From NCBI RefSeq assembly GCF_021028975.2, contig NC_059433.1:50282001-50346000 (forward strand): a stretch of 64,000 nt of DNA. Reading direction: 5' to 3'. Positions 1 to 64,000 of the stretch are shown here, in pieces. The notes under the pieces are model-generated. The model was not told where the DNA came from, ran no database searches, and was given only the letters and a program-made list of their open reading frames with translations. The position numbers and the translations under genes were made by a program. Origin of the DNA: Sphaerodactylus townsendi (lineage: Eukaryota). The first letter of the stretch is position 1. Each line of letters begins with the position of its first letter.

Positions 1-1106
1 AAGTTTGGTTTCACTAAGGCGTCTGATAAAGTCCCCCATGATATTCTTGCAAACAAGCTAATAACATGTGAGTTGACAATGCTAATGTTAGATGGATTTG
101 TAATTGGTTGACTGACTGAACCCAATAGCTTATCTTCATCCTGGAGAAAAGTGACTAATGGGGTGCCATAGGGTTCTGTCCTGGGCCCAGTGCTATTCAG
201 TATTTTTATCAATAACTTGGATGATGGAATAGAGGGCATGCTAACCAAATTTGCAGAGGACACCAAACTAGGAGGGGTAGATAATACCTCAGAGTACAGG
301 GTCAGAATTCAAAATGATCTGAACAGATTAGAGAGCTGGGCCAAAACTAACAAAATTAATTTCAGCAGAGATAAATGCAAAATTCTATGCTTAGGCAGGA
401 AAAAGGAAATGTACAGATATAAGATGGGTGGCACCTGGCTTGAAAACAGGACATGTGAAAGGGATCTGGGAGCCTTAGTAGTCCACAAACTGAACATGAG
501 TCAGCAGTGTGATGCAACAGTCAAGAAAGCCAATGTGATTCTGAGCTGAATCAATAGGAGTATAGTGTCTAGATCGAGGGATGTAATAGTACCACTCTAC
601 TGTGCATTGATCAAACCTCACCTAGAATACTGTGTCCAGTTCTGGACACCACAATTAAAGAAGGATATTGACAAGCTGTAACAGGTCCAGAGGAGGGTGA
701 CCAAAATGGTAAAAGATCTGGATTCCATGCCCTATAACAAGAGGCTTAGGGAACTGAGTATGTTTAGTCCAAAGAAGAGAAGGTTAAGGGATGACATGAT
801 AGCCATATTTAAATATTTGAAGGGGTGTCATGCTGAAGATGGAGCAAACTTGTTTTCTGCTGCTCCAGAAATTGCAGGAAAAGAGAGTCTACCTAAACAT
901 CAGGAAGAACTTCCTGATGGAAAAGGCTGTTCAACAGAGGAATATGCTTCCTTGAAATGTGGTGGAGTCTCCTGCTTTGGAGGTTTTTAAACAGAAGCCG
1001 AATGGCCATCTGCCAAGGGTGCTTTGATTATGTGTTCTTGCATGGCCAGGGGGTTGGACTTGATGGACCTTGTGGTCTCTTCCAACTCTATAATTCTATC
1101 ATTCTA
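1..1106 (+). mobile_element. CR1 LINE 3' fragment (degraded RT C-terminus and 3' tail)
   Basis: LFSIFINNLD...[18 protein letters not shown]-like segment, and (ATTCTAT)-type 3' repeats near 1085-1106. Confidence 0.93.
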
Positions 1107-2040: not shown

Positions 2041-3207
2041 CATAAGAACATAAGAACATAAGAACAAGCCAGCTGGATCAGACCAAAGTCCATCTAGTCC
2101 AGCTCTCTGCTACTCGCAGTGACCCACCACGTGCCTTTGGGAGCTCACATGTAGGATGTGAACGCAATGGCCTTCTGAGGCTGTTGCTCCCGATCACCTG
2201 GTCTGTTAAGGCATTTGCAATCTCAGATCAAGGAGGATCAAGATTAGTAGCCATAAATCGACTTCTCCTCCATAAATCTGTCCAAGCCCCTTTTAAAACT
2301 ATCCAGGTTAGTGGCCATCACCACCTCCTGTGGCAGCATATTCCAAACACCAATCACACGTTGCGTGAAGAAGTGTTTCCTTTTATTAGTTCTAATTCTT
2401 CCCCCCAGCATTTTCAATGAATGCCCCCTGGTTCTAGTATTGTGAGAAAGAGAGAAAAATTTCTCTCTGTCAACATTTTCTACCCCATGCATAATTTTGT
2501 AGACTTCAATCATACCCCCCCCCCCCCCCCAGACGTCTCCTCTCCAAACGACAGACCCCCAAGCGCTGCAGCCTCTCCTCATAGGGAAGGTGCTCCAGTC
2601 CCTCAATCATCCTTGTTGCCCTTCTCTGCACTTTTTCTGTCTCTTCAGTATCCTTTTTTTGAGATCGCGTGCAACCAGAACTGGACACGAATACTCTCCA
2701 GAATGCTTGATCGCACCGCGTGCTTCTATAAGGGCATGACAATCTTTGCAGTTTTATTATCAATTCCTTTTCTAATGATCCCCAGCATAGAGTTTTGCCT
2801 TCTTTACGACTGCCATGCATTGAGTTGACATTCCCATGGAACTATCAACTAAGACGCCTAAATCCCTTTCCTGGTCTGTGACTGATAGCACTGACCCCTG
2901 TAGCGTGTATGTGAAGTTTGGATTTTTTGCCCCTATGTGCATCACTTTACATTTTGCTACATTGAACTGCATTTGCCATTTCTCAGCCCACTCACCTAAT
3001 TTATCAAGGTCCGCTTGGAGCTCTTCGCAGTCCTTTGTGGTTCTCACCACCCTACATAATTTGGTATCATCTGCAAACTTGGCCACCACGCTACCCACCC
3101 CTACTTCCAGGTCATTTATGAATAGGTTAAAGAGCACTGGTCCCAAAACGGATCCTTGGGGGACACCACTCCCGACATCTCTCCATTGTGAGAACTTCCC
3201 ATTTACA
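2041..3207 (-). mobile_element. Young 5'-truncated CR1 LINE
   Basis: Minus-strand GVPQGSVLGPVLFNLFINDL...KFADDTKL; (TTCTTATG)3 tail at 2041-2065. Confidence 0.95.
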
Positions 3208-3916
3208 GAACTTCCCATAATCAGTTGCCAGTATACCCATATGAATGTCAACATCCACCAAACTGTAGGCTTTTAGTCTACCACAACAACACAATCAAAC
3301 TCTGATTTCAGTCTTCTGTGGATTTGCCCTAACTTCAAACTAAGCAATATCAGACTTTGAGTGAGTCAGCCTAAGGAACTCCCTCACTCTCTTTGCAAGA
3401 TACAAAAGAATGAATTAATCATAGGTACGTGCCGGCCAGTGTCTTTTCTTTTGCTGGCTCAGTTCAAGATAGGTGTGGCATTTATGAATTACAGTTTGAG
3501 AAAGTTTCGCTGAGAATAAAAAGTTAATTTTTACCTACAGTCTCAGCACTTCAAGGTGGAATCTTTTAAAATGACATTACCGTGACATATTGCTATCTGG
3601 GGTGGAACAAAAGTAAAAAGCAGGACTTGTGCTCATCATTAAAGAATGTTTTGCATTGGATTTCCTTATTCTACCACTGACCAATGGAATCACCCAATAC
3701 AAATAGACCTGTTTAGAAAGTGAGTGTGGACAACTGAATTTGATTCTATATTTAGCAATTCTGGACTGTTGGGATAGTATGGCAACGAAGAGAGGAGGAA
3801 GCATAGATATTATAGTTGTCAGAAGCTAAGTTTTCCATTCCACTGTTATGGATGTATAGTTCTCTCCTTTAGGCTTGTCCTTCAGTGGCATACGTCAAAG
3901 AAGACAGACCCTATAC

Positions 3917-16800: not shown

Positions 16801-19800
16801 AACATGGATATAAGGCTGGTTGAAAAGGCTGTGGTCTTGAGGAACACTGATTCTCAATTACTTAGTTAACAGCAATGGGGTTATAGTGGACCCAGCACTA
16901 TTACTGGAGAAGCAAGTTAATGCTGCTGCAGCAGCAGCAGCAAAAAAAAAAGGTATTCTATTAGTTTCATTTAACCCAGAAGATGGCCCTCTACCTTGAC
17001 TCGGCTGATCTGGCCACATGGATCCATGCTATGATTACCTTGAAACTAGACTATTGTGATGCACTCTGTAAGGGCCTGTTCTTAAAGACAACTTTAAGAA
17101 ACTCCAGTTGATGCAGAATGCTGCAGCCTGCTTAGTGTCAGGTGCTAGGTGGGACATGCATGTCATACCCATTCTGCAGATACTGCTTTGATTGCCAATC
17201 AGTTACTGAGTTCAATTTCAGGTTCTGGTTATCATCTACAAAGCCCTTGATGACCTTGGATCTGCATACTTGCAGTGCTGCCTCTCCCGCTACTCTTCGC
17301 TGCAACCAGTTTTTTTCATCCAAACAAAGCCTCCTAAAGAGGCTACCCTTCAAAAGCCTTCCATAGAATGTGCAAACCAGAAATGTTCAGGAGATATTTT
17401 TAAAAGGAATGTATTAGAATGGAACAGTTCAGGTGGGGACCTTTATAATGGAATAGAATTGTAATCATTGCTGTGATTATTGTTGGTATCACCAACTTTT
17501 ACAGCCTTGTTTTATACCTTGTAATTCATGTTGTCTTCATTTGTTGTTAGCATTGTTCTCTGATTCTGTAAGCCTATTCCCATTGCATTGTCTATTAGTT
17601 GTTTTATGTAGTTTGATTTTACTCTTAGCCATATAACTACACCCAGGCCTTGACTTAGCATAGCTACAGCAGTACCTTATGGTCTAAGCAAAGAAAGACA
17701 GTGCTGGGTGTCATCAGTATATTGATGATACTGTACTTCAAACCTCCAAATTATCTTTGACAGAGGGTTTTATCCAGGGACTGCCTATTTCTAACTGCTA
17801 AAAACCTTGAACAGTAATCACAAACACTGTGGGGAGGTACAGAAAAACAGGTGCTGGGCTTTCTAGTGAACTGTATATATGAAACAAATATAAAGTACTT
17901 CCGCCCTCACTAAATTAGTGTGAGATATATTATAAACAAAACTCAGAATGAATGGCCAAACATCAGAACCAAAAGATTCCTATGTGCTTTCAAACATTTT
18001 GGCGGTGACTGTGCCCCACAATGTAAGTGGGAAAAATGCAAACTTCTCACACCACCTGCAATTCAATAAATTAATCATTTAAATTCCATAGAATCTTTTG
18101 GATTGAACCAAAACTTATCTACCTTTATATGAGTTGTTGCAGTCTCTCAGCATAGAAAGTGGCTTCATGAGGTCATCAATCATGACTCAAACCCAGATTT
18201 ACTTAATTTAGCAGAGTGACACTTATAACGAGGACTAGAGCGGGCATTACTGATCGGGTATAATACAATCCTGAGTAATTCAATGTGATTTTTTTAAGCT
18301 TGATGACAGAAAAAAATATTGTCCCGAATACAATCATCAGTGGTTATCACATTCCTCTAAATAGGAAAGGATCAAACTATTACTGCTTGAACAGTAAGTA
18401 GAGCAGACTGCAAATTGCTTCACATTAATGCCTCAGTCAAGCTAGGGAAGCAGCTGCATGCTGAAGTAATTTGCTTACTGTATTATAACTGAATTGTTGA
18501 GTTGTGTAATAGTTCAATGTGATATAACTTTCTTGTTCTTCAGATTCAAATCCCAGATAAAGTCAGTCATAGCTTATCGTAACAGAAATACCTGTATAGG
18601 AATCGAAGGCGTATCTGGGCCAAACTGTGCCGGGGCGGACTCTATGTTTTCCGAGACCTTGGGGCTCTCAAGGTCTCCTGGGTAGTGTAGTTCCCACCAG
18701 GGCCCTTTTCAGGCCATTTCCCAGGCTGAACTTTTTCAGGCTGAACTAAGAAGTAGGGGGGTGCAGGGGGCCACAGGAGGGAGGGGCAATTTTCCTGGCC
18801 CCCTAGATGTGCACCTGGTGCAATCCCCCCACCCCCTTGTAATTTTGCTACTGATAGGAATGAATGCAAAATATGCAAGGGATTTTAGATAAAGCACCTT
18901 CATATTGATCCAAAGTTTCTTTACTATCTTTTTCCTAGTCTGTACCTGCACAGGTCTGAGAAAAGGCATGAATCAGGTTGAACTGTGCTGGAGAATATGA
19001 CAGAATTATTTGTAATGCCAGGGCAGGGTAGAATTTGGCATGAGACAAAGAAACGTATGTCTCATCCAGAACAAAGAAATCCACCCTGGAACAGAAACCT
19101 CTCCTGGGCTAGACATGCATCTTTGAAACTTGCTGGGACTTGAAAAACAATGTCATGACAGACATACTGATTTTTGTACTAAGGACTGGGAGACGCCCTC
19201 AGAAATACTTATTGTATATACTGTCTATTTTCTTAGAACAGTATTTACAGTTCCAGAGGGGCATGTGCATTTTCATGAGAAAACCATAAATTCAAATCAT
19301 AACTACCAACAACTGAAAATATTTTAAAAGTACATACAAGCCTTCTTATTTGGCAGTTTATATTTGCATGGCATATTTAAAACCCTAGTTCCATTAAGAA
19401 GCATGCAGCTGATGAAATAGGCTCTTGCCCATGTTTCTGTAAGGCTGCATCCCTAAATACACTTTTTATGGAGTAAGCACCACTGACTCGTAACCTCATC
19501 CGTAGCTCTCGGCATCAGGATACAGTGCTTCTGTAGCGCTACTCCACTTCCTCCAAGATGGCTTTCTAGTGGCATGGGGAGCAAAAAATGCAACCCTCAC
19601 CACCACCTCCAGAAAGCCCACCATAGGACTTACAGGACCACCAAACAGGCTCCTGGCCCTAAACTAGTGTTGGCTCCTGGGAACACCCCTTCCCCACTCC
19701 AAGACTGGCGTCCAGTTGGGACACCAGCTCAGCCCTGCTGTGGTGTGAACATCTGGATTTTGTGGCAGCAGGTCTGAGGGCAGGTGGCTGCTGATGCATC

Positions 19801-31800: not shown

Positions 31801-34800
31801 GCAGTACTGCAGCTTACCATTCTGTGTCTGGAGACTACATAAGCTCATTGCATATAAATATATATACTCATTACATATAATATCACCCGTCTGAAAAAAG
31901 ATGTGCACTCAGCACCATCATGTTACTGTTTTAGCCATGTCTGCACAGAAAGTAGCATGGTAGATGTAGATCTGCCCACTTTTTCTCCATCAGCAAAGAA
32001 GAATGGCATGGTGCTTCATGTGTGGAATGGTTCTGCTCCTGGACTTCTTTGGCTGTAACAGACTAGCATGGCTACCCCTCTGAAAACCTAAAAAGTCTTG
32101 CTTGGCTTTACTTCTAGTAATAGCAAATGGAAAATTTGATTTTAGTATTTTTGATCTGAACATTTGCTATTCTTATCAGGGAAATTTGTCGATTTGCATT
32201 CTTCAGTGTGGAAACTGATGTGTGTATCTGCTAAAGGTTTGTTGTTCTCTCTGCAGGAAGTTGATTATGAACAACTACAGACAATGAACTTAAATATTGT
32301 TGTGTCTAACAAAGCAGCATATCACAAATCAGTTACTAGTAGTGGTTACCAAGCACAACCAATTCCAGTTAAAATTAATGTGATAAATGTAAAGGAAGGT
32401 CCTGTGTTTAAGCCCCAAACGGTGATAATTAAAGCAAACAGAACAATGACAGTGAACCAGAGTCTGGGAAGGGTTGCAGCATGGGATGAAGACACTGGAA
32501 AAATAGCAGAACGTATCAGGTAGGATTTCTTACTTTTATCCAGGATATTACTTAGAGTGTATTACAGCTGCAGTCAGATGTCACAAAGAAATCCCAGTTT
32601 GTTTCTGATAAGAGCAAGTGAGAACATTTACACAGTTGCTCCTTGATCTTTCCTGCCCTTAGGTGCCGTGTTGATTTAGTACACTTTGTGCCTCTCTTCC
32701 TCCAAAAAGTTCAAGTAATATACTTTGTTTTCTTTTCCTCTGTTTTAACTTCACAATAACCCCGTGAGGTAGAACTGCAAACCAGGAAGTCTTAAATAAA
32801 ATACAAGGTCACTGTGACATCCAAATGAAGCACTTAAACAAAGTGCAATTTGTGAATCATCAAGTTGAAGATTTCCTGGCTCATAGTTTCTGTACAAACA
32901 CAAGAAGTGGGGGCAGGGGGGGATGCGCTAGGCCAAGTATTTTGGCTTATTATCATCAGAAACAAGCTGAGATTTGTTTGTGATGCACAAATGCAGCCAA
33001 AGTCAAGTCAGGCTGATTCCGCATGGGCCAAAAACAGTGGTGTGAAAACGGTGTGAAAACAGTTTGAACCCTTTTAAACCCTTTTACACCATTTTCACAC
33101 CGTTTTCACACTGCTGTTTTTGGCCCATGCGGAATCAGCCTCACTGAATAGCAATTAATCTCAGATGGAAATTTCATGTGACAATGTACTGAAATGGTTA
33201 TGCTGTTTTTGCCAGTTCTTTGTGATTTCAATTGCAACCTTGCTGTTAGATAAACAAATGTAATGAAACTGCAGTGCAATCCTACGCAAACTTTCTTGGG
33301 AGTCAGCTCCATTGAGTAGATTTCAGTGTGAAAGTCCCATGAATTATATAAATTCATCATTTTAGTGTATAGACTATTAAATAACACAGATTTAGAATTT
33401 TGCAGATGCAGAATTTTCCTAATAAAATGCATCCATGTGTAGTTCTGTTGTGCTGTATTACTATATATTGAAAGGGTTTGTATGTGCTTGCATATGTGTG
33501 TGTGTGTGAAGTGCCATTAAGTTGCTTCTGACTTATGGTGACCCTATGAATCAATAATCTCCAAACCATCTATTGTTAACAGCCTTGCTCAGGACTGTAA
33601 CTTCTTTTATTGATTTATTCCATTTAATGTTGAGTCTTCTTCGTTTCCTTCTCCCTTCAACTATTCCTGGCGTTATTGTCTTTTCCTGTGATTATTATCT
33701 TCTCATAATGTGATTTAAAGTACACTAGCCTCAGTTTAGTCATTTTAGCTTTTAAGGAGAGTTCTTGCTAGATTTGATCTAGAACCCACCTATTTGTCTT
33801 TTTGGCAGTCCACAGTATCTATAAAACTCTCCTTCAACACCACATTTCAAACTTTCTTCCTGTCAAGCTTTCTTCATTGTCCAGCTTTTATACTCCTACA
33901 TAGTAAGGCCACATAAATACATTTCCTTTAAAAGAAAATATGGAAAGACGCTTGGGAAAAAATTTAGGACAGAAAAAAACATGGAAAAATAAAATTTACA
34001 CATTTCATTATTTTGCAAAACAGATGAGCGCTATATGTTTGTGCATCAAACTGGCTTTGTATACCAAATTCCCTTGAATAGTTAAACATCTATTAAATTT
34101 TTGTACAGGTATGCCAAAGATCGTGATGTTGAAAACTGGTTTACAATAGATTCTAAAACTGCTGAAATCAAGCTTATTAAAATACCTAGATTCGACTCAT
34201 CTTCTCTAGTCAATGGTAGTTACATTGCAACAATTTTGGCTATAACTGAAGGTAAGTAATGGCTCTCTTTCCCTTATTTCCAAAGAACGATCAACATTTA
34301 AACAGCTGCAGTATCAAGTCAGTATCTGAACAATGACCAGGAGGCAGTCTAAACATTTTTGGTTTGGTTACTAGTGACCAAATCTTAGGCCTGTTCCGCA
34401 TGGGCCAATAAGCAGGTGTAGGACAGTAAAAATCCCATTTTGAGGGAGAACTTCACACAGATTCCACCCTAAAACAAGTCTGCCCCATGTTGTTTTCCCC
34501 AAACTGTCTTTTTGAGAATCACGCTATTAGCGAGTCTTTTGGAAAAACTCTGGGAGCAAATGGTCAGGCAGGAGGCAATTTATTCACCTCCATTTTCCTT
34601 TTTAAAAAATTTTGCAGCTTACATGTGCGTAGCTACGCAGGTGCAAATATTCATATCATCAGACATCAGCATGGCTGTGGGGGTTCATTTGTGCATATCT
34701 GTGTAGCTACGCACGTGTGGAAAGTAATTTTTAAAAAATAAATGCATCTCCATGCGAAGGCACAACAGCAACCCAGATTGTTTCTGTGGGCTCCGATCAC

Positions 34801-40800: not shown

Positions 40801-41884
40801 AGGTATTCGATTTGAACTAAATTCAAATTCGACTAAGTGACAAATGAACAGGGGTTGCTAATGGATAGAAAGCTGGAGTATGGCAGAATTGAAAATCACA
40901 TATTTTAATGGGTTTTTAATGAACACCATTGCTGGTTGTTCTTCATTTTAGAAATATGTTGCTTTTGCTGATGAAGATGAAGGTCACCTTGCAAAAGACT
41001 GCCTATTACTTTACTCTCAGAAGGAGGAAGGAGGCTCTACCCATGGCTCTATTGGCTGCTGCAGCTTTATTGAAGATGAATTTGATGACAGTTTCCTGAA
41101 TGACTTAGGAGATAAATTTAAGACTCTGGCTGAGATCTGTGTGGGTAAACGCATGGGCACATTAGCTGGGCAGCACGGTTCTCAAATCCTGAAAGATACA
41201 GTGGATGAAGTGGATGTACATGGTTTGAGTTCAAAGCACAACTATTCTTCAGCCTCTGGCTACCAACTACCTGAAACCACAAAAGCTTTTGGTGCAGATA
41301 CTGTAATGGAAGAGCTGGTAACTGAGTCAGCTTTTTCATCCAGATCTGGCCTCCAGCCACCTAAGCCTATGCCTGACCCCATGTTAAGCAGCAATGTTGT
41401 TGTGACAGAAACATCTTATGGGGCAGCACCCCCTACAGTGATCCTGGACCCTCAAATGGAAAATGTCGTTGTGACAGAGAGGGTGCTTGCTCCTGCTTCC
41501 AGCTTGCAGGAAGTGTTGGAAATACCTCATGGAGTCTTTCACGATCTCCCAGATTCAAAGTACGTTGTAGTGAGAGAAAGGGAAAGGGTTCTTGTACCTA
41601 GCTCTAACCTACAAGCTTCCTTAAGTATCCCCAATTTATCAGAAGGACAGAACATGATAGTAACTGAAAGTACAGTTTCATCCTCCTCTGGTTTGCAGGC
41701 TGCAAGTACACAAAGCATGACAGAGCCAGCCATGTATTCTGGCAGTGATAGGCACAAACACATATTGATCTCAGATCCCCTTTTTCACCAAGGCAGCACA
41801 GAGGAAGTACTTCCTCTGGGTTCTTCTTTGAGCAAGTCCTCACGGCTCACAAAATACAGCTCTGTGCAATATACTCGTTCCTAA
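10831..41884 (+). CDS. DSG2: Desmoglein-2, complete 15-exon gene span (spliced CDS 3288 nt, 1095 aa)
   Basis: Signal peptide, RQKR furin site followed by EW, four EC repeats plus an anchor domain, TM segment [26 protein letters not shown] segment SIGCCSFIE...[16 protein letters not shown] repeat-unit domain, and C-terminus [13 protein letters not shown]. Exon sizes and phases match my recollection of human DSG2, and the gene lies directly upstream of TTR. Confidence 0.96.
11690..11992. mobile_element. Palindromic repeat, probably Penelope-derived, interrupted by a MITE
   Basis: Ends agaagagttagattt / aatctagctcttct are inverted; same family as 30204-30538. Confidence 0.6.
11775..11915. mobile_element. 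PIF/Harbinger-type MITE (141 bp)
   Basis: TIRs GGCTCATTCCGCAC / GTGCGGAAGGGGCC; 3-bp TSD TTC; near-identical inverted copy at 30319-30459. Confidence 0.85.
16860..17340 (+). mobile_element. L2-clade LINE RT C-terminal remnant
   Basis: Degenerate LDYC..L..GL...[10 protein letters not shown] motif. Confidence 0.8.
20219..20330. mobile_element. Short Penelope-like inverted terminal remnant
   Basis: Similar to the ends of the element at 20535-20991. Confidence 0.7.
20535..20991. mobile_element. Penelope-like element with inverted pseudo-LTRs, nested in a MITE
   Basis: ~125-bp inverted arms; 12-bp TSD GCTAGAATTACA (20523-20534, 20992-21003). Confidence 0.85.
20622..20662 (-). ncRNA. Minimal type I hammerhead ribozyme motif (Penelope-associated)
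   Basis: Minus strand reads CCU-CUGAAGA-U-GCCAGC-CACAGAU-GCAGGC-GAAAC-GUU-AGG: intact core, stem II and a 3-bp stem I. Confidence 0.7.
22208..22243 (+). CDS. DSG2: DSG2 exon 2 ([12 protein letters not shown])
   Basis: Acceptor tttttttcttgcag, 36-nt phase-0 exon, donor gtagg; resembles human ICFNVGSGLHLQ. Confidence 0.88.
22715..23536. mobile_element. Non-autonomous Tc1/mariner (Tc2-like) element
   Basis: TA-flanked TIRs CCATATATACTTG / TGAGTATATACGG; repeated subterminal GTATAAGTCGA motifs; long internal palindrome. Confidence 0.82.
24955..25083 (+). CDS. DSG2: DSG2 exon 3 (propeptide, RQKR, EC1 start [23 protein letters not shown])
   Basis: Acceptor ttttttcccttgtcag, donor gtaagg; furin site and adhesive Trp2. 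Confidence 0.95.
26415..26935 (-). mobile_element. RTE-clade LINE fragment, preceded by a short CR1 3' end (~26355-26415, +)
   Basis: Minus-strand [16 protein letters not shown]...LFNLYAE...GVKIGG...YVDDT. Confidence 0.85.
26939..27160 (-). mobile_element. Squamate tRNA/CORE-type SINE (Squam3-like), 3' part
   Basis: Reverse complement matches the SINE at 43001-43273, including the (CTT)n tail. Confidence 0.8.
27544..27705 (+). CDS. DSG2: DSG2 exon 4 (IRSD...[10 protein letters not shown])
   Basis: 162 nt with AG/GT boundaries; EC1 DRE motif. Confidence 0.95.
27844..27988 (+). CDS. DSG2: DSG2 exon 5 (LKGLAINW...[10 protein letters not shown]...EELSDV)
   Basis: 145 nt with AG/GT boundaries; DINDN Ca2+ motif. 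Confidence 0.95.
29111..29479. mobile_element. Young CpG-rich PIF/Harbinger-type MITE
   Basis: Perfect 14-bp TIR GGCCCTTTCCGCAC; flanks TGA/TTA; many intact CpGs. Confidence 0.85.
29569..29735 (+). CDS. DSG2: DSG2 exon 6 ([14 protein letters not shown]...LDRE)
   Basis: 167 nt with AG/GT boundaries; ATDAD and LDRE motifs. Confidence 0.95.
30319..30459. mobile_element. PIF/Harbinger-type MITE (141 bp) nested in the palindromic repeat 30204-30538
   Basis: Inverted copy of 11775-11915. Confidence 0.85.
30948..31082 (+). CDS. DSG2: DSG2 exon 7 (VHSSYSL...[14 protein letters not shown])
   Basis: 135 nt with AG/GT boundaries; AKDRNG and DVNDN motifs. Confidence 0.95.
31206..31391 (+). CDS. DSG2: DSG2 exon 8 (YEGNVQEN...NEGILTLVK)
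   Basis: 186 nt with AG/GT boundaries; DKD and SGNEGGYF motifs. Confidence 0.95.
31542..31830 (-). mobile_element. Sauria SINE-like element
   Basis: Characteristic tactcattttactgacctcaggaggatgaaaggctgagtcaaccttgagc segment and an ACCT-type tail. Confidence 0.78.
32257..32519 (+). CDS. DSG2: DSG2 exon 9 (EVDYE...NVKEGP...AWDEDTG)
   Basis: 263 nt with AG/GT boundaries; desmoglein-type NVKEG linker. Confidence 0.95.
33011..33140. mobile_element. Near-perfect palindromic MITE (130 bp)
   Basis: GGCTGATTCCGCATGGGCCAAAAACAG...CTGTTTTTGGCCCATGCGGAATCAGCC with TSD TCA. Confidence 0.9.
33490..33905 (-). mobile_element. RTE-type LINE 3' end
   Basis: RTE-like 3' UTR (cataagtcagaagcaacttaatggcac) with a CA-type tail. 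Confidence 0.68.
34109..34251 (+). CDS. DSG2: DSG2 exon 10 ([11 protein letters not shown]...LAITE)
   Basis: 143 nt; acceptor ttgtacag, donor gtaagt; phase consistent with neighbouring exons. Confidence 0.93.
34388..34894. mobile_element. PIF/Harbinger-type MITE (507 bp)
   Basis: Termini GGCCTGTTCCGCA / GCGCAGAAGGGGCC with TTA TSD. Confidence 0.75.
35560..35787 (+). CDS. DSG2: DSG2 exon 11 (FPSKTATGT...CPT...KWAIGQVH)
   Basis: 228 nt with AG/GT boundaries; extracellular-anchor cysteines. Confidence 0.94.
36021..36216 (+). mobile_element. tRNA-derived SINE with a CR1-like tail (Squam2-like)
   Basis: A-box-like cagtggtagagca, degenerate B box, and 3' tail gtctgacccggtgtaaggcagcttcatat. Confidence 0.7.
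37590..37820 (+). CDS. DSG2: DSG2 exon 12 (DNQGFSC...CTC...C, start of TM segment)
   Basis: 231 nt with AG/GT boundaries; DNQGFSC and [11 protein letters not shown]. Confidence 0.94.
38463..38590 (+). CDS. DSG2: DSG2 exon 13 (end of TM segment, [11 protein letters not shown])
   Basis: 128 nt; acceptor ttttcttttacag; intracellular-anchor WxxEGA motif. Confidence 0.94.
39535..39891 (+). CDS. DSG2: DSG2 exon 14 (Gly/Ala/Met-rich; WEEQR; [11 protein letters not shown])
   Basis: 357-nt phase-0 exon; acceptor ctag, donor gtaag. Confidence 0.9.
40020..40525 (+). mobile_element. L2-clade LINE 3' end
   Basis: [15 protein letters not shown]-like segment followed by a T-rich 3' UTR and terminal stem. 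Confidence 0.65.
40952..41884 (+). CDS. DSG2: DSG2 exon 15 coding part (ICS, IPL, RUD and terminal domain)
   Basis: Acceptor cattttag; open frame to TAA at 41882-41884; [18 protein letters not shown] and VVVTE repeats. Confidence 0.96.
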   Translation, partial: KYVAFADEDEGHLAKDCLLLYSQKEEGGSTHGSIGCCSFIEDEFDDSFLNDLGDKFKTLAEICVGKRMGTLAGQHGSQILKDTVDEVDVHGLSSKHNYSSASGYQLPETTKAFGADTVMEELVTESAFSSRSGLQPPKPMPDPMLSSNVVVTETSYGAAPPTVILDPQMENVVVTERVLAPASSLQEVLEIPHGVFHDLPDSKYVVVRERERVLVPSSNLQASLSIPNLSEGQNMIVTESTVSSSSGLQAASTQSMTEPAMYSGSDRHKHILISDPLFHQGSTEEVLPLGSSLSKSSRLTKYSSVQYTRS

Positions 41885-59700: not shown

Positions 59701-60166
59701 CCCATTTTCTGCCAGCAGAAAGCTCTTTTCAGCCAGCAGAAAGCTGTTTCTGTTTCCATTTTGCCCTGGGTGCCATTTTCACCCACTACACCCCTGCAGG
59801 TAACTATCACCCCTACTAGTTCCATCAACTAAAACAGGAAACAGCCTACTTTGGATAACACTTCAATGGCCCAACTTTATTCAATTATTTATTTACATTG
59901 ATCCAAGGGGATCTGCAAGGCCCACATGCCAATCCCCATTTCAATCCCATTTGCAGTGCATGTGATTGATGGGATAAGAAGAGTTATGTCTCCTCGTGTT
60001 TGTGCATACCTGAATTTATGGTCAAGGACACCTTGGCTCCAAGCCTTGAGTCATCAATTAGAATGGGTAGGGCTCCTCCTTGCCAAGCCTTTGTGATGCT
60101 TGAGAAAGATGTGCCATTTCCTACTCCTCTTGCCACATGATTTATGGGATCAAGGATAATGACACC

Positions 60167-61326
60167 CCAAACCGTAATAGGGCCAAGAAAGGTGTTACTA
60201 GATATATGGGGAAAATGGAGAGGTAAATGGATGCCCGGCACTCTGGACGTGGCACCTTTGGCAAGTGTGGCCGGAAAAGATGGGGAAAAAGTGATAAAAA
60301 TATTGAAAAGACAAGGAATTCAAACTGTTGCAAATCTGATAAGAGAAGGAGGAGAAATTATGACATTACAAAATTTTATAGAGTTAGGAGGTAATGAGAA
60401 CTGGTTGGTCTTGAGGGGCATTTGGGAAAGGATAAAGGTTTCACGAATAAGAGGAGAATGTATAATGGCTAAATGTTTTGAACTATATGAAAAATGTAAA
60501 GGGAAAATTTTGGGACATATATATAAGTATATGGTTGATGACAAAGACTTTATGATAAGAACATTGAATCAAAAATGGGAGAAGGAAGGTTTTCTAGACA
60601 CTGAAAAAACTGAAAATTTAATAGACAGTTGGAAAAATATAAAGATTGAGAAATATATGGAGTTGGAAAGAAAAGTGATATTGAAATGGTATAGAACACC
60701 AAAACAACTAGCATATATGATTAAAGGACTCCGTCCTAAATGCTGGCATTGCGGAGATCAGGAGGCATATTATAGCCATATGTGGACGGAATGTATAGAA
60801 GTGAAAAAAAATTGGACAACCATAATGTTATATATCGAGAAACTGGTGAAGATTAATATTGGGATAAATAATGATTTAATGTTCATGGGTGTATGGAGGA
60901 TAGAAGGGTAGATAAAAATATAGCTATATGTATAAAATAATGATCAAAGCAGCACATGCAACAATAGCTTTAGGCTGGAAAGAAAAGAAAAAATGGACAA
61001 TCCTGAAATGGTTGGAATATATCTGGGAACAAGTAACACTGGACATTTTCAATCTAATAACAAAAAATAAACTGTGGCAAGATAAACAGGGCGAAATTTT
61101 GAAGATATGGTCAATATATGCGGACTGGATGAAAGAAACTGGAGTCAATGAGGAGATACAGGAGAAGAGATTACAAAGAATGAACTTACTGCTGTATGTT
61201 TGATAAAACTATGAAGAAAATATAGGGGGAGGGGGAAAGGGGGAAAATGTATTGTTTGAAAACGAATGAAGAAGAGTATTAATAAAAAATGGAATATTCA
61301 AATGATACAATAATTTTTTTTAAAAA
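60167..61326 (+). mobile_element. 5'-truncated L1-clade LINE (ORF2 C-terminus with CCHC zinc finger)
   Basis: KWYRTP...CWHCGDQEAYYSHMWTEC; G-rich 3' UTR, AATAAA, A tail; 15-bp TSD AAGGATAATGACACC (60152-60166, 61327-61341). Confidence 0.92.
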
Positions 61327-62959
61327 AAGGATAATGACACCACTCCAGGTTTTCCTGTCCCAGGTCTATAAAGCCGCAAGGCCTGGTCTGTGGGTTAAGT
61401 CTTCACCATCCAAAGTGTTCACCTAAGTTCCCCCAGAGTGCTCACCTAAGTTGTACTGTGTACCATTCAAACAACTTGACCTGCACAATTACCCCTATGG
61501 GGGTGGCAGATTGCCACTTGGTCAACCACTATCCCATCAGCCCCCAATAGAAGCTATGCTGCAGATTCCCCTGAAGACATCATTGCCCACATCCATGAAA
61601 GACCCTGCCAGCCCATATCAGGTGGTCATACCAGGCCTCCCAAGTTGGGCAACCCCAGCAGGTACCCCATGCCTCTTCCAGTACCTCTAACAAGCTCCAT
61701 GACAGGACATGCCAGACACTGAATCATTAACTCATTTTTTCTTTAGCTGGGGTTTATGTTCCACTTAAAGGGCTTGCTTAATAACACATCTTAATGCTAA
61801 GTTTCCTGTCTGCTCGCATACCTTTTATTTGTCTTGTCTGGTAGTGATAAGAGAGTTAATGTGGTTAAATTTATTATTTTTTGCTCTTACAATTAGGGAT
61901 TTGTATGTATGATCTAAACCTTGAGCTAGAACATTTTAAAAATGTATGTATTTATTTAAATATTTAATAATTGTGGACTTGTTTTTTTTATTTGCCCAGT
62001 TGCTTTAGCACTAGGTGTTCTATTTTCTTTGTAGTCCCAATCCTACTTAGGCAGGGGTGAAGGAAGCTGCATGGTTTTTCTCTTCAGTTTCTGGCCTTGG
62101 CCATTTTACCTCCTTTCTTGACTTACATTTACGTTCAGTTGTATTAACCGTATTTACGCATTGGAATTAATTGAATTGCTCCTATTAGATGCCCAATTCA
62201 GCTTCAAGTGGTCATTCTCAGCATGATACGTTCGATTTTTCAATACCGTCAGTGCATTATTTAAGAGGCTGGCAAAGGTGCAGAATAAGGAAACAAAAAT
62301 GAACTTCGACTTTGCCAAAAGCATTTTGTAAGTGTGGCTACATTAAAATGTCATAACAAAGCACAGTTTATAAACCAATGTTAGACTGAACTCTGATTTA
62401 TCATTATGTCTGAATGCAGACTGCCCAACATTCTCATATCCCTGGAAAAGGCAAGTGACCTAGGGCCAACTAAATGTGACACCATCCTCATGGCCCATAG
62501 TCATTTTAAATGCTGCAAGGGTCCGGTCCTGATAAAGCACACAGTGTGGTGCTCTTGTATCAGTCTAAATAGATTATACAAAAAGCTACATCCATGCAAA
62601 GCCAAGAAGAAAACAAAATTATTAAAGAAAAAGTGTGTACCAAATTAAGCAAGAATAACTTCTTGCTGCACATTTTTTAGCAAGGGAAAATATGCACAGC
62701 AAGGTATATAATACGCAGTAAGTACACTGACATAAATAACTGGCGTGGGTGAGGCCTGAAGACAGTCATAAAATTTTATAGTTGGAGAGAATTCAAAGAA
62801 TCATGAATATACTTCATTACTGAACTAAAGCAACAGCTACCACAGCTAGTGTACTAATTAAAGTAAATTAACATGGAAGAATACAGGTAAGATATAAACA
62901 GAACTACAGTTTGCCAATACACTATGAGGATTCTATGATAGGTAATGTTCAAGCAAACA

Positions 62960-63276
62960 ACTGGTGTCTGTTTTTTTCACATTTGATGTCTTAATCCCTG
63001 CAGACAAGGTTCATGGTTGTGTGGGTTACTGATTCTCTTACTCCCAATACCTGTGCAGCTTTTCCTTACACACACAATAATCCCATGGATTTGTGAGGGG
63101 CCAACTAATGGAAGAAATGCACAGCTGGACTGCTTACTAAGTAAATAATCAGAATCAGCAGGTTTAGAGTCATATGGGCCAACAATAAGTAGCATGTTTT
63201 GTAGTAGGATAGAGTATAAAATCTCAGGCTGCACCAGCTACTAGTTGCTTACAGAGGTTCTCTGACTGCTTATACA
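62960..63276 (+). promoter_or_regulatory. TTR proximal promoter and 5' UTR
   Basis: HNF4-like CAAGGTTCAT (63005-63014), HNF1-like GGTTACTGATTCTC (63024-63037), FoxA-type ACTAAGTAAATAATCAGAATCAGCAGGTTT (63136-63165), TATAAAA (63215-63221), probable start site ACAGAGGT (~63251). All resemble the mammalian TTR promoter as I recall it. Confidence 0.88.
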
Positions 63277-63345
63277 ATGGCCTCTTCCTCTCTGCTTCTT
63301 ATTTGTTTGGCTGGAGTGGTATATCTTGCAGAATGTGCACCACTG
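63277..63345 (+). CDS. TTR: Transthyretin exon 1 (MASSSLLLICLAGVVYLAECAPL); gene continues beyond the window
   Basis: 69-nt signal-peptide exon resembling sauropsid TTR leaders; donor GTAAGT; TTR-type promoter upstream; synteny with DSG2. Confidence 0.93.
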
Positions 63346-64000
63346 GTAAGTATTGGATTAGTTGTTCAGTGACTAATAAGATTTTTAAAAATACAATCTT
63401 TTCAACTATGTAACATCAAATCCTTACTGTAAACAGCCAGAATCTTTGATGACTATATCATTAAGGTGTCTTAGGTATGCGTTACTTTCATCATTTTGGT
63501 ACAAGCCTGATTTGGAGACTCATTCATGAAATTCTATAAACTGAAGTTCTGATGACTGGTAATTGTAAAAACTCTAGTTTTGCTATGGATAATGACATAT
63601 GTCTGTCATATGTCGTGTGTGTTGTGTTTTTCATTTAAATCAGATTATCGGTAATTAGGGGAAGTTCACACATAAATCTCAAGGCTTTTATTGTATGATA
63701 TGTGACAAATTTTACCATCAGTGAAATCTCCAAGTCCTCAGACATAGCTATTGTGTCTAGTTCATTTTAAAACAGATTCAACGGTATACTCTAAACGTGT
63801 ATGTAGTCCATATGAAATTTGAAAACCTTAAATGGCAACTGCTTTTTCAGTATTTGCATTTTGAGCAAACATCTGGAGTTCAAGATATGAAGGCAGTATC
63901 AGTGGTAAATGAGCCATTAGCACTGGGTTTTCTAATTCTGTAAAGTGGGAATATATTTTACTTCTATCACAGAATAATGAACATTGGTTCTCTGGAATTC

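Follow-up and report, generated by a model that had tools for sequence, protein, structure and literature searches.

A 95-nt middle segment in the TTR proximal promoter of Sphaerodactylus townsendi, probably a functional module rather than a decaying transposon

The mouse promoter and its counterpart here

TTR has a textbook liver-specific promoter, which is also a workhorse of gene-therapy vectors, and the tissue switch of the gene, with choroid plexus expression starting in reptiles and adult liver expression confined to birds and some mammals, is a classic of comparative endocrinology. The closest described system is the mouse TTR -202 proximal promoter, which PMC1464811 and PMC12786076 cite from Costa, Grayson and Darnell 1989, and the mouse site coordinates used below are those of Costa et al. 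1989 as quoted in PMC1464811. A review names HNF4 and HNF3-S as the most critical sites in this promoter and reports that the enhancer compensates for the loss of HNF1 or HNF3-W in mouse. With respect to physiology, Richardson's reviews describe albumin as generally the sole plasma thyroid-hormone carrier in adult fish, amphibians, reptiles, monotremes and some marsupials, place TTR in the blood during development (juvenile crocodiles included), and date choroid-plexus TTR synthesis from stem reptiles.

The window, that is, the whole 64,000-nt stretch of Sph. townsendi DNA analyzed here, shows the usual synteny, with DSG2 followed by TTR on the same strand. DSG2 exons were searched one by one rather than as a joined spliced model; a cadherin exon at 32164-32520, upstream of TTR, matches PDB desmoglein-2 (E=7e-18), and the homologues of the last-exon open reading frame (41141-41884) include proteins named "desmoglein-2-like". 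The coding part of TTR exon 1 starts with an ATG at 63277, encodes 23 codons of signal peptide (MASSSLLLICLAGVVYLAECAPL), and is followed by a GT donor at 63346. An exact look-up of ten window ORFs in the protein collection gave no match. The promoter was compared by eye with the mouse TTRmin sequence as printed in PMC9835819, mouse being the sole mammal compared, and contains the following features (a dot instead of a strand in the lists of this text means that no strand is assigned).

62992-62997, + strand: TAATCC, a K50-homeodomain/OTX-type motif from a motif scan; by eye TAATCT in mouse (PMC9835819); outside the coverage of the deep relative L003 (below)
63002-63013, + strand: HNF4-type DR1 remnant AGACAAGGTTCA; mouse AGGCAAGGTTCA at -151/-140 (PMC1464811)
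63012-63022, + strand: weak FoxA counterpart CATGGTTGTGT; mouse CATATTTGTGT; match to TRTTTRY lost
63025-63037, + strand: HNF1-like site GTTACTGATTCTC; three mismatches to GTTAATNATTAAC
63038-63132,.: 95-nt spacer (middle module), missing from the mouse promoter in the by-eye comparison; present in the related organisms C, D and E and in L003
63133-63172, + strand: block 2, ortholog of the mouse segment from HNF3-S (-106/-91) toward TATA; 36/40 identical
63139-63147, - strand: strong FoxA site TATTTACTT; mouse TATTGACTT; perfect match to TRTTTRYTW
63215-63221, + strand: TATA box TATAAAA, 42 nt after block 2; conserved in L003
63277-63345, + strand: coding part of TTR exon 1, from ORF translation and GT donor; same donor in L003

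The two promoters share the order and orientation of their sites (HNF4, weak FoxA, HNF1, strong FoxA, TATA) as well as their position between DSG2 and TTR exon 1. Block 1 (63005-63037, with the HNF4 half-site, the weak FoxA and the HNF1 site) matches mouse at 29 of 33 positions (88%), and its last element, GGTTACTGATTCTC, ends at 63037; block 2, with the strong FoxA site and the bases that follow it, reaches 90%. TATA follows block 2 at much the same distance (after 42 nt here, after 39 nt in mouse); the 39-42 nt preceding TATA are unrelated in sequence. The main difference lies between the blocks: the halves stand 95 nt apart here vs. 6 nt in mouse, a difference of 89 nt. The HNF4/weak FoxA/HNF1 block sits 95 nt further upstream than the mouse footprints (-151 to -109). 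A strong FoxA site ~100 nt upstream of the start and a TATA box at about -30 are both present. Given the orthology of the blocks to mouse, the HNF/FoxA cassette is older than the mammal-reptile split.

The individual sites differ in how well they have been kept. The HNF4-type site shows one difference from mouse, in its 5' half-site, and its 3' half-site is intact. The weak FoxA core has been degraded (ATTTGTG in mouse, GGTTGTG here), and the AP-1-like heptamer has one mismatch more than in mouse (TGACTAA in mouse, TTACTAA here). The HNF1-like site carries the same three mismatches as mouse GTTACTTATTCTC; it differs from mouse only by a T>G at the unconstrained central N, and the constrained positions are as in mouse. 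The strong FoxA site reads TATTTAC here vs. TATTGAC in the mouse promoter, and this G>T change presumably removes the Onecut/HNF6 core ATTGAY. That is, the most critical mouse sites (the strong FoxA site, the HNF4 half-site, the constrained HNF1 positions, and the TATA box) are, as far as their letters go, intact here.

Much of the original prediction, all coordinates of which proved exact when re-checked against the letters of the window, is borne out by this comparison. It had identified the region as the TTR promoter, which agrees with the position between DSG2 and TTR exon 1 and with the mouse-like blocks; it had described a cassette whose HNF1 and strong FoxA halves lie ~90 extra nt apart relative to mouse and which predates the mammal-reptile split, and both statements hold; and the altered weak FoxA and AP-1-like sites that it had pointed out are real.

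A few further motifs were seen around these sites. The upstream TAATCC (62992-62997) may be an ancient site, given its alignment with mouse TAATCT. A second perfect FoxA consensus, TGTTTGCTT, occurs at 62951-62959 (- strand), ~290 nt before the predicted start and beyond the mouse-alignable region. Finally, the window held no match to an approximate, and hence unreliable, mouse distal-enhancer pattern.

Age and constraint of the spacer

The spacer is shared among relatives of very different divergence. Contigs of organisms C (99% identical to the window), D (~97.6%), and E (~95%) cross it without an indel. A more diverged relative, L003, was found through a chance antisense ORF over the promoter (62980-63234, - strand), for which a single ORF-like protein was recovered, on a 940-nt Logan contig; a second antisense-frame protein search yielded no candidates, and a metagenome scan for a conserved 22-mer returned 0 matches. 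The L003 contig carries the TTR promoter and exon 1; the latter encodes MASSSLLLVCLAAMVYITEATPL, with 77% of its nucleotides shared with the window. Identity drops to 61% in the 5'UTR, where there is also an 11-nt indel, and intron 1 can hardly be aligned. Such a divergence is comparable to that of the DSG2 class at 62% protein identity, whose 3'UTRs align at chance level.

L003 holds the whole spacer, which is 97 nt long there (i.e., 2 nt longer) and is identical at 75 of 95 positions (79%; 77% with gaps included). By comparison, 42 equally long intron windows averaged 48% identity to L003 and reached 62% at most. In block 2, 39 of the 40 positions are identical to L003. Two uninterrupted runs of identity fall within or extend into the spacer:

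63077-63091,.: ATAATCCCATGGATT, a TAATCC plus inverted GGATT palindrome; 15-nt run identical in L003
63122-63166,.: 45 nt without a single difference in L003, in which a CAGCTG E-box (63122-63127) is fused to the strong FoxA block

Since the spacer's identity to L003 exceeds that of both the intron and the 5'UTR, and the 15- and 45-nt perfect runs survive, we conclude that the spacer is under purifying selection.

The comparison with organism E, for which only that organism's difference rows were counted (apparently complete up to 63382), points in the same direction for the blocks: 0 of 103 block positions are changed vs. a flank rate of 7.2% (P=0.0004). Block 1 alone is unchanged as well (0/55, P=0.016) and has therefore stayed under constraint after the spacer arose. 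Within the spacer, three of the 95 positions are changed vs. 6.9 expected from the same flank rate (P=0.08), and all three changes lie in stretches that are variable in L003 too. Overall, the spacer behaves as an old, single-copy, and selectively maintained promoter module, with the constraint being read from one deep pairwise comparison (i.e., with L003) and from the listed differences of the close species.

Transposon, filler, or mammalian loss

The original prediction had taken the extra sequence for a small decayed TE on account of two pairs of repeats:

63037-63042, + strand: left CTTACT of a 6-nt direct repeat; right copy at 63133-63138, inside the conserved FoxA block 2; both kept in L003
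63051-63065, + strand: left arm of an imperfect inverted repeat; right arm at 63110-63124; 15 nt, 12/15 complementary

Both pairs are real, but each is close to what chance would give. A flanking 6-nt direct repeat was found at 7.5% of random boundary pairs, and a 12/15 inverted repeat in 2.5% of the shuffles and in 5% of 95-mers from the genome; the DNA fold of the spacer has a z-score of -1.77. In L003 the inverted repeat stands at 11/15 (counted on the alignment) and the changes are not compensatory. Its arms are set back from either boundary by 8 nt, these outer stretches of 8 nt show no complementarity by eye, and there are no terminal inverted repeats at the very ends of the spacer. The likeness to MITE-like insertions consists of the size of ~90 nt, the short flanking direct repeat, and the internal imperfect inverted repeat; unlike in such insertions, the repeats are non-terminal, no second copy was detected, relatives show no empty site, and the sequence is constrained.

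The copy number of the spacer was assessed at two levels. Other copies were not found in the 64-kb window (30-32-mers with 3 mismatches; blastn-short), and when whole-genome contigs of organisms C, D, and E were aligned to 62500-63700 at a likeness of at least 80%, exactly one contig in each of the three genomes covered the spacer. The spacer hence came out as single-copy at both levels, and no empty orthologous site was seen among the four relatives C, D, E, and L003. Searches for tandem repeats and Rfam families over 60-64 kb gave nothing relevant. In the same contig alignments, a short dispersed repeat at 62504-62551 drew three or four extra contigs per related genome, unlike the spacer. 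We also considered an origin of the spacer by tandem duplication and rejected it, as the alignments to its flanks were no better than those of shuffles (74/500 and 178/500 reached the score).

These results bear on whether a small, decayed transposon between HNF1 and strong FoxA split a cooperative liver cassette in this lineage and thereby lowered adult hepatic TTR, which we now regard as quite improbable. The explanation draws on the 89 extra nt relative to mouse, on CTTACT at both ends together with the 12/15 inverted repeat (each in just 2.5-7.5% of controls), on the altered weak FoxA and AP-1-like sites, and on the reviews, which give adult reptiles no plasma TTR and name the choroid plexus as the producer. 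However, neither the window nor the contigs of the three related genomes hold a further copy, the repeat arms start inside the boundaries, a target-site duplication would imply zero spacing between the halves before insertion, and the spacer is conserved in L003 well above the intron level, so that the description as a decayed TE is not supported. Furthermore, block 1 remained unchanged after the event, the sites that count most in the mouse promoter have been kept, and adult plasma TTR is reported to be lacking in fish, amphibians, monotremes, and some marsupials as well. An ancient TE that has since been co-opted is a different matter and a possible origin of the spacer, because the direct and inverted repeats would occur jointly at only ~0.4% if independent.

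It is also conceivable, albeit very unlikely in our judgment, that the spacer is neutral filler whose conservation reflects anchoring between ultra-conserved blocks or a locally low mutation rate. The organism E changes, which are not significantly below the flank rate (3 vs. 6.9 expected, P=0.08), and the 2-nt length difference in L003 would fit such filler; the 77% identity to L003, compared with no more than 62% in any of the 42 intron windows and with 61% in the neighboring 5'UTR, as well as the persistence of perfect 15-nt and 45-nt runs, would not. Alternatively, the spacer might be ancestral to amniotes or sauropsids and lost in mammals, with the compact mouse layout being derived. Squamates have kept the module for long and under constraint, and with mouse as the sole outgroup both a gain here and a mammalian loss fit the data; yet the conserved motifs of the module leave no trace between the mouse blocks, and no third lineage gives positive evidence for a loss. 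We consider such a loss unlikely. With respect to a bird, the quail locus L001 (Callipepla squamata, GCA_002218305.1) has an annotated TTR model of 161 aa whose first exon (18300-18311) consists of 4 codons and is separated from DSG2 by 5.2 kb. The next 4.8 kb, up to the 10 kb after DSG2 that were examined, contain neither a TTR-like exon nor a promoter block. The annotated first exon is probably spurious, with the true quail TTR start located more than 10 kb from DSG2.

A middle module and its possible role

We favor, as reasonably probable, the reading that this is the orthologous squamate TTR proximal promoter with an extra, functional 95-nt middle module, and not a liver cassette being broken by a decaying transposon. 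Under this reading, the promoter would have three parts: the HNF4/weak-FoxA/HNF1 block, the middle module, and the strong-FoxA block plus TATA at a mouse-like distance from the start. The middle module is old and has become fixed, being common to four close species and one relative whose intron barely aligns, and it evolves about as slowly as the signal-peptide exon. Because it is single-copy and this slow-evolving, we read it as a putative functional element of the promoter, to which additional factors probably bind; the TAATCC...GGATT palindrome and the CAGCTG E-box are the candidate sites.

By its sequence, the palindrome is a candidate K50 paired-like (OTX2/CRX/PITX) TAATCC element: its TAATCC is perfect, only 3 nt separate it from the inverted GGATT, and the deep relative has kept both. 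The arrangement is not that of the canonical P3 dimer site. A GGATTA in the intron (63355-63360) is not conserved and reads GCATTA in L003. OTX2 is a regulator of the choroid plexus and the RPE, two tissues that both make TTR. It is tempting to speculate that the module was a squamate (or sauropsid) regulatory gain within a 300-million-year-old liver promoter, whose OTX2-type palindrome and E-box shift TTR toward choroid plexus/eye and away from adult liver. We consider such a gain with a tissue shift doubtful; if true, it would offer a cis-regulatory handle on the long-standing puzzle of why vertebrate classes differ in the tissues that make TTR.

None of the results supports the proposed link between the spacer and weak adult hepatic TTR, and weak TTR expression in adult liver is probably the ancestral condition. 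According to the reviews, plasma TTR is generally lacking in adult fish, amphibians, reptiles, and monotremes, and therefore no lineage-specific break of the promoter is needed. The conserved HNF/FoxA blocks would fit continued use, e.g., in developmental liver expression. Our literature search returned nothing usable on lizard liver TTR RNA-seq. The finding should be viewed as a modest cis-regulatory curiosity and not as an explanation of reptile TTR physiology. Nonetheless, a conserved module between the HNF1 and FoxA sites suggests that the tight mammalian arrangement of these sites is not obligatory, and it represents a concrete element for tests in hepatocytes and choroid plexus.

Finally, a few observations concern the surroundings of the promoter. 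LINE-type reverse-transcriptase-like ORF fragments with a FADDTKL motif lie at the start of the window (190-549 and 2244-3276). An open ORF of 255 aa with a CWHC...H...C motif near its end extends over 60144-60911 (+ strand), ~2.3-3.1 kb upstream of TTR; neither Pfam nor an exact look-up in the protein collection gave a match for it, and we take it to resemble the C-terminal part of an L1-type ORF2. At 62912-62916, ~330 nt upstream of the TTR start, a short stretch that is absent in the window and in organism C adds ~33-34 nt (CAAAAAAGAGAAGG...TTTTC) to the sequences of organisms D and E.
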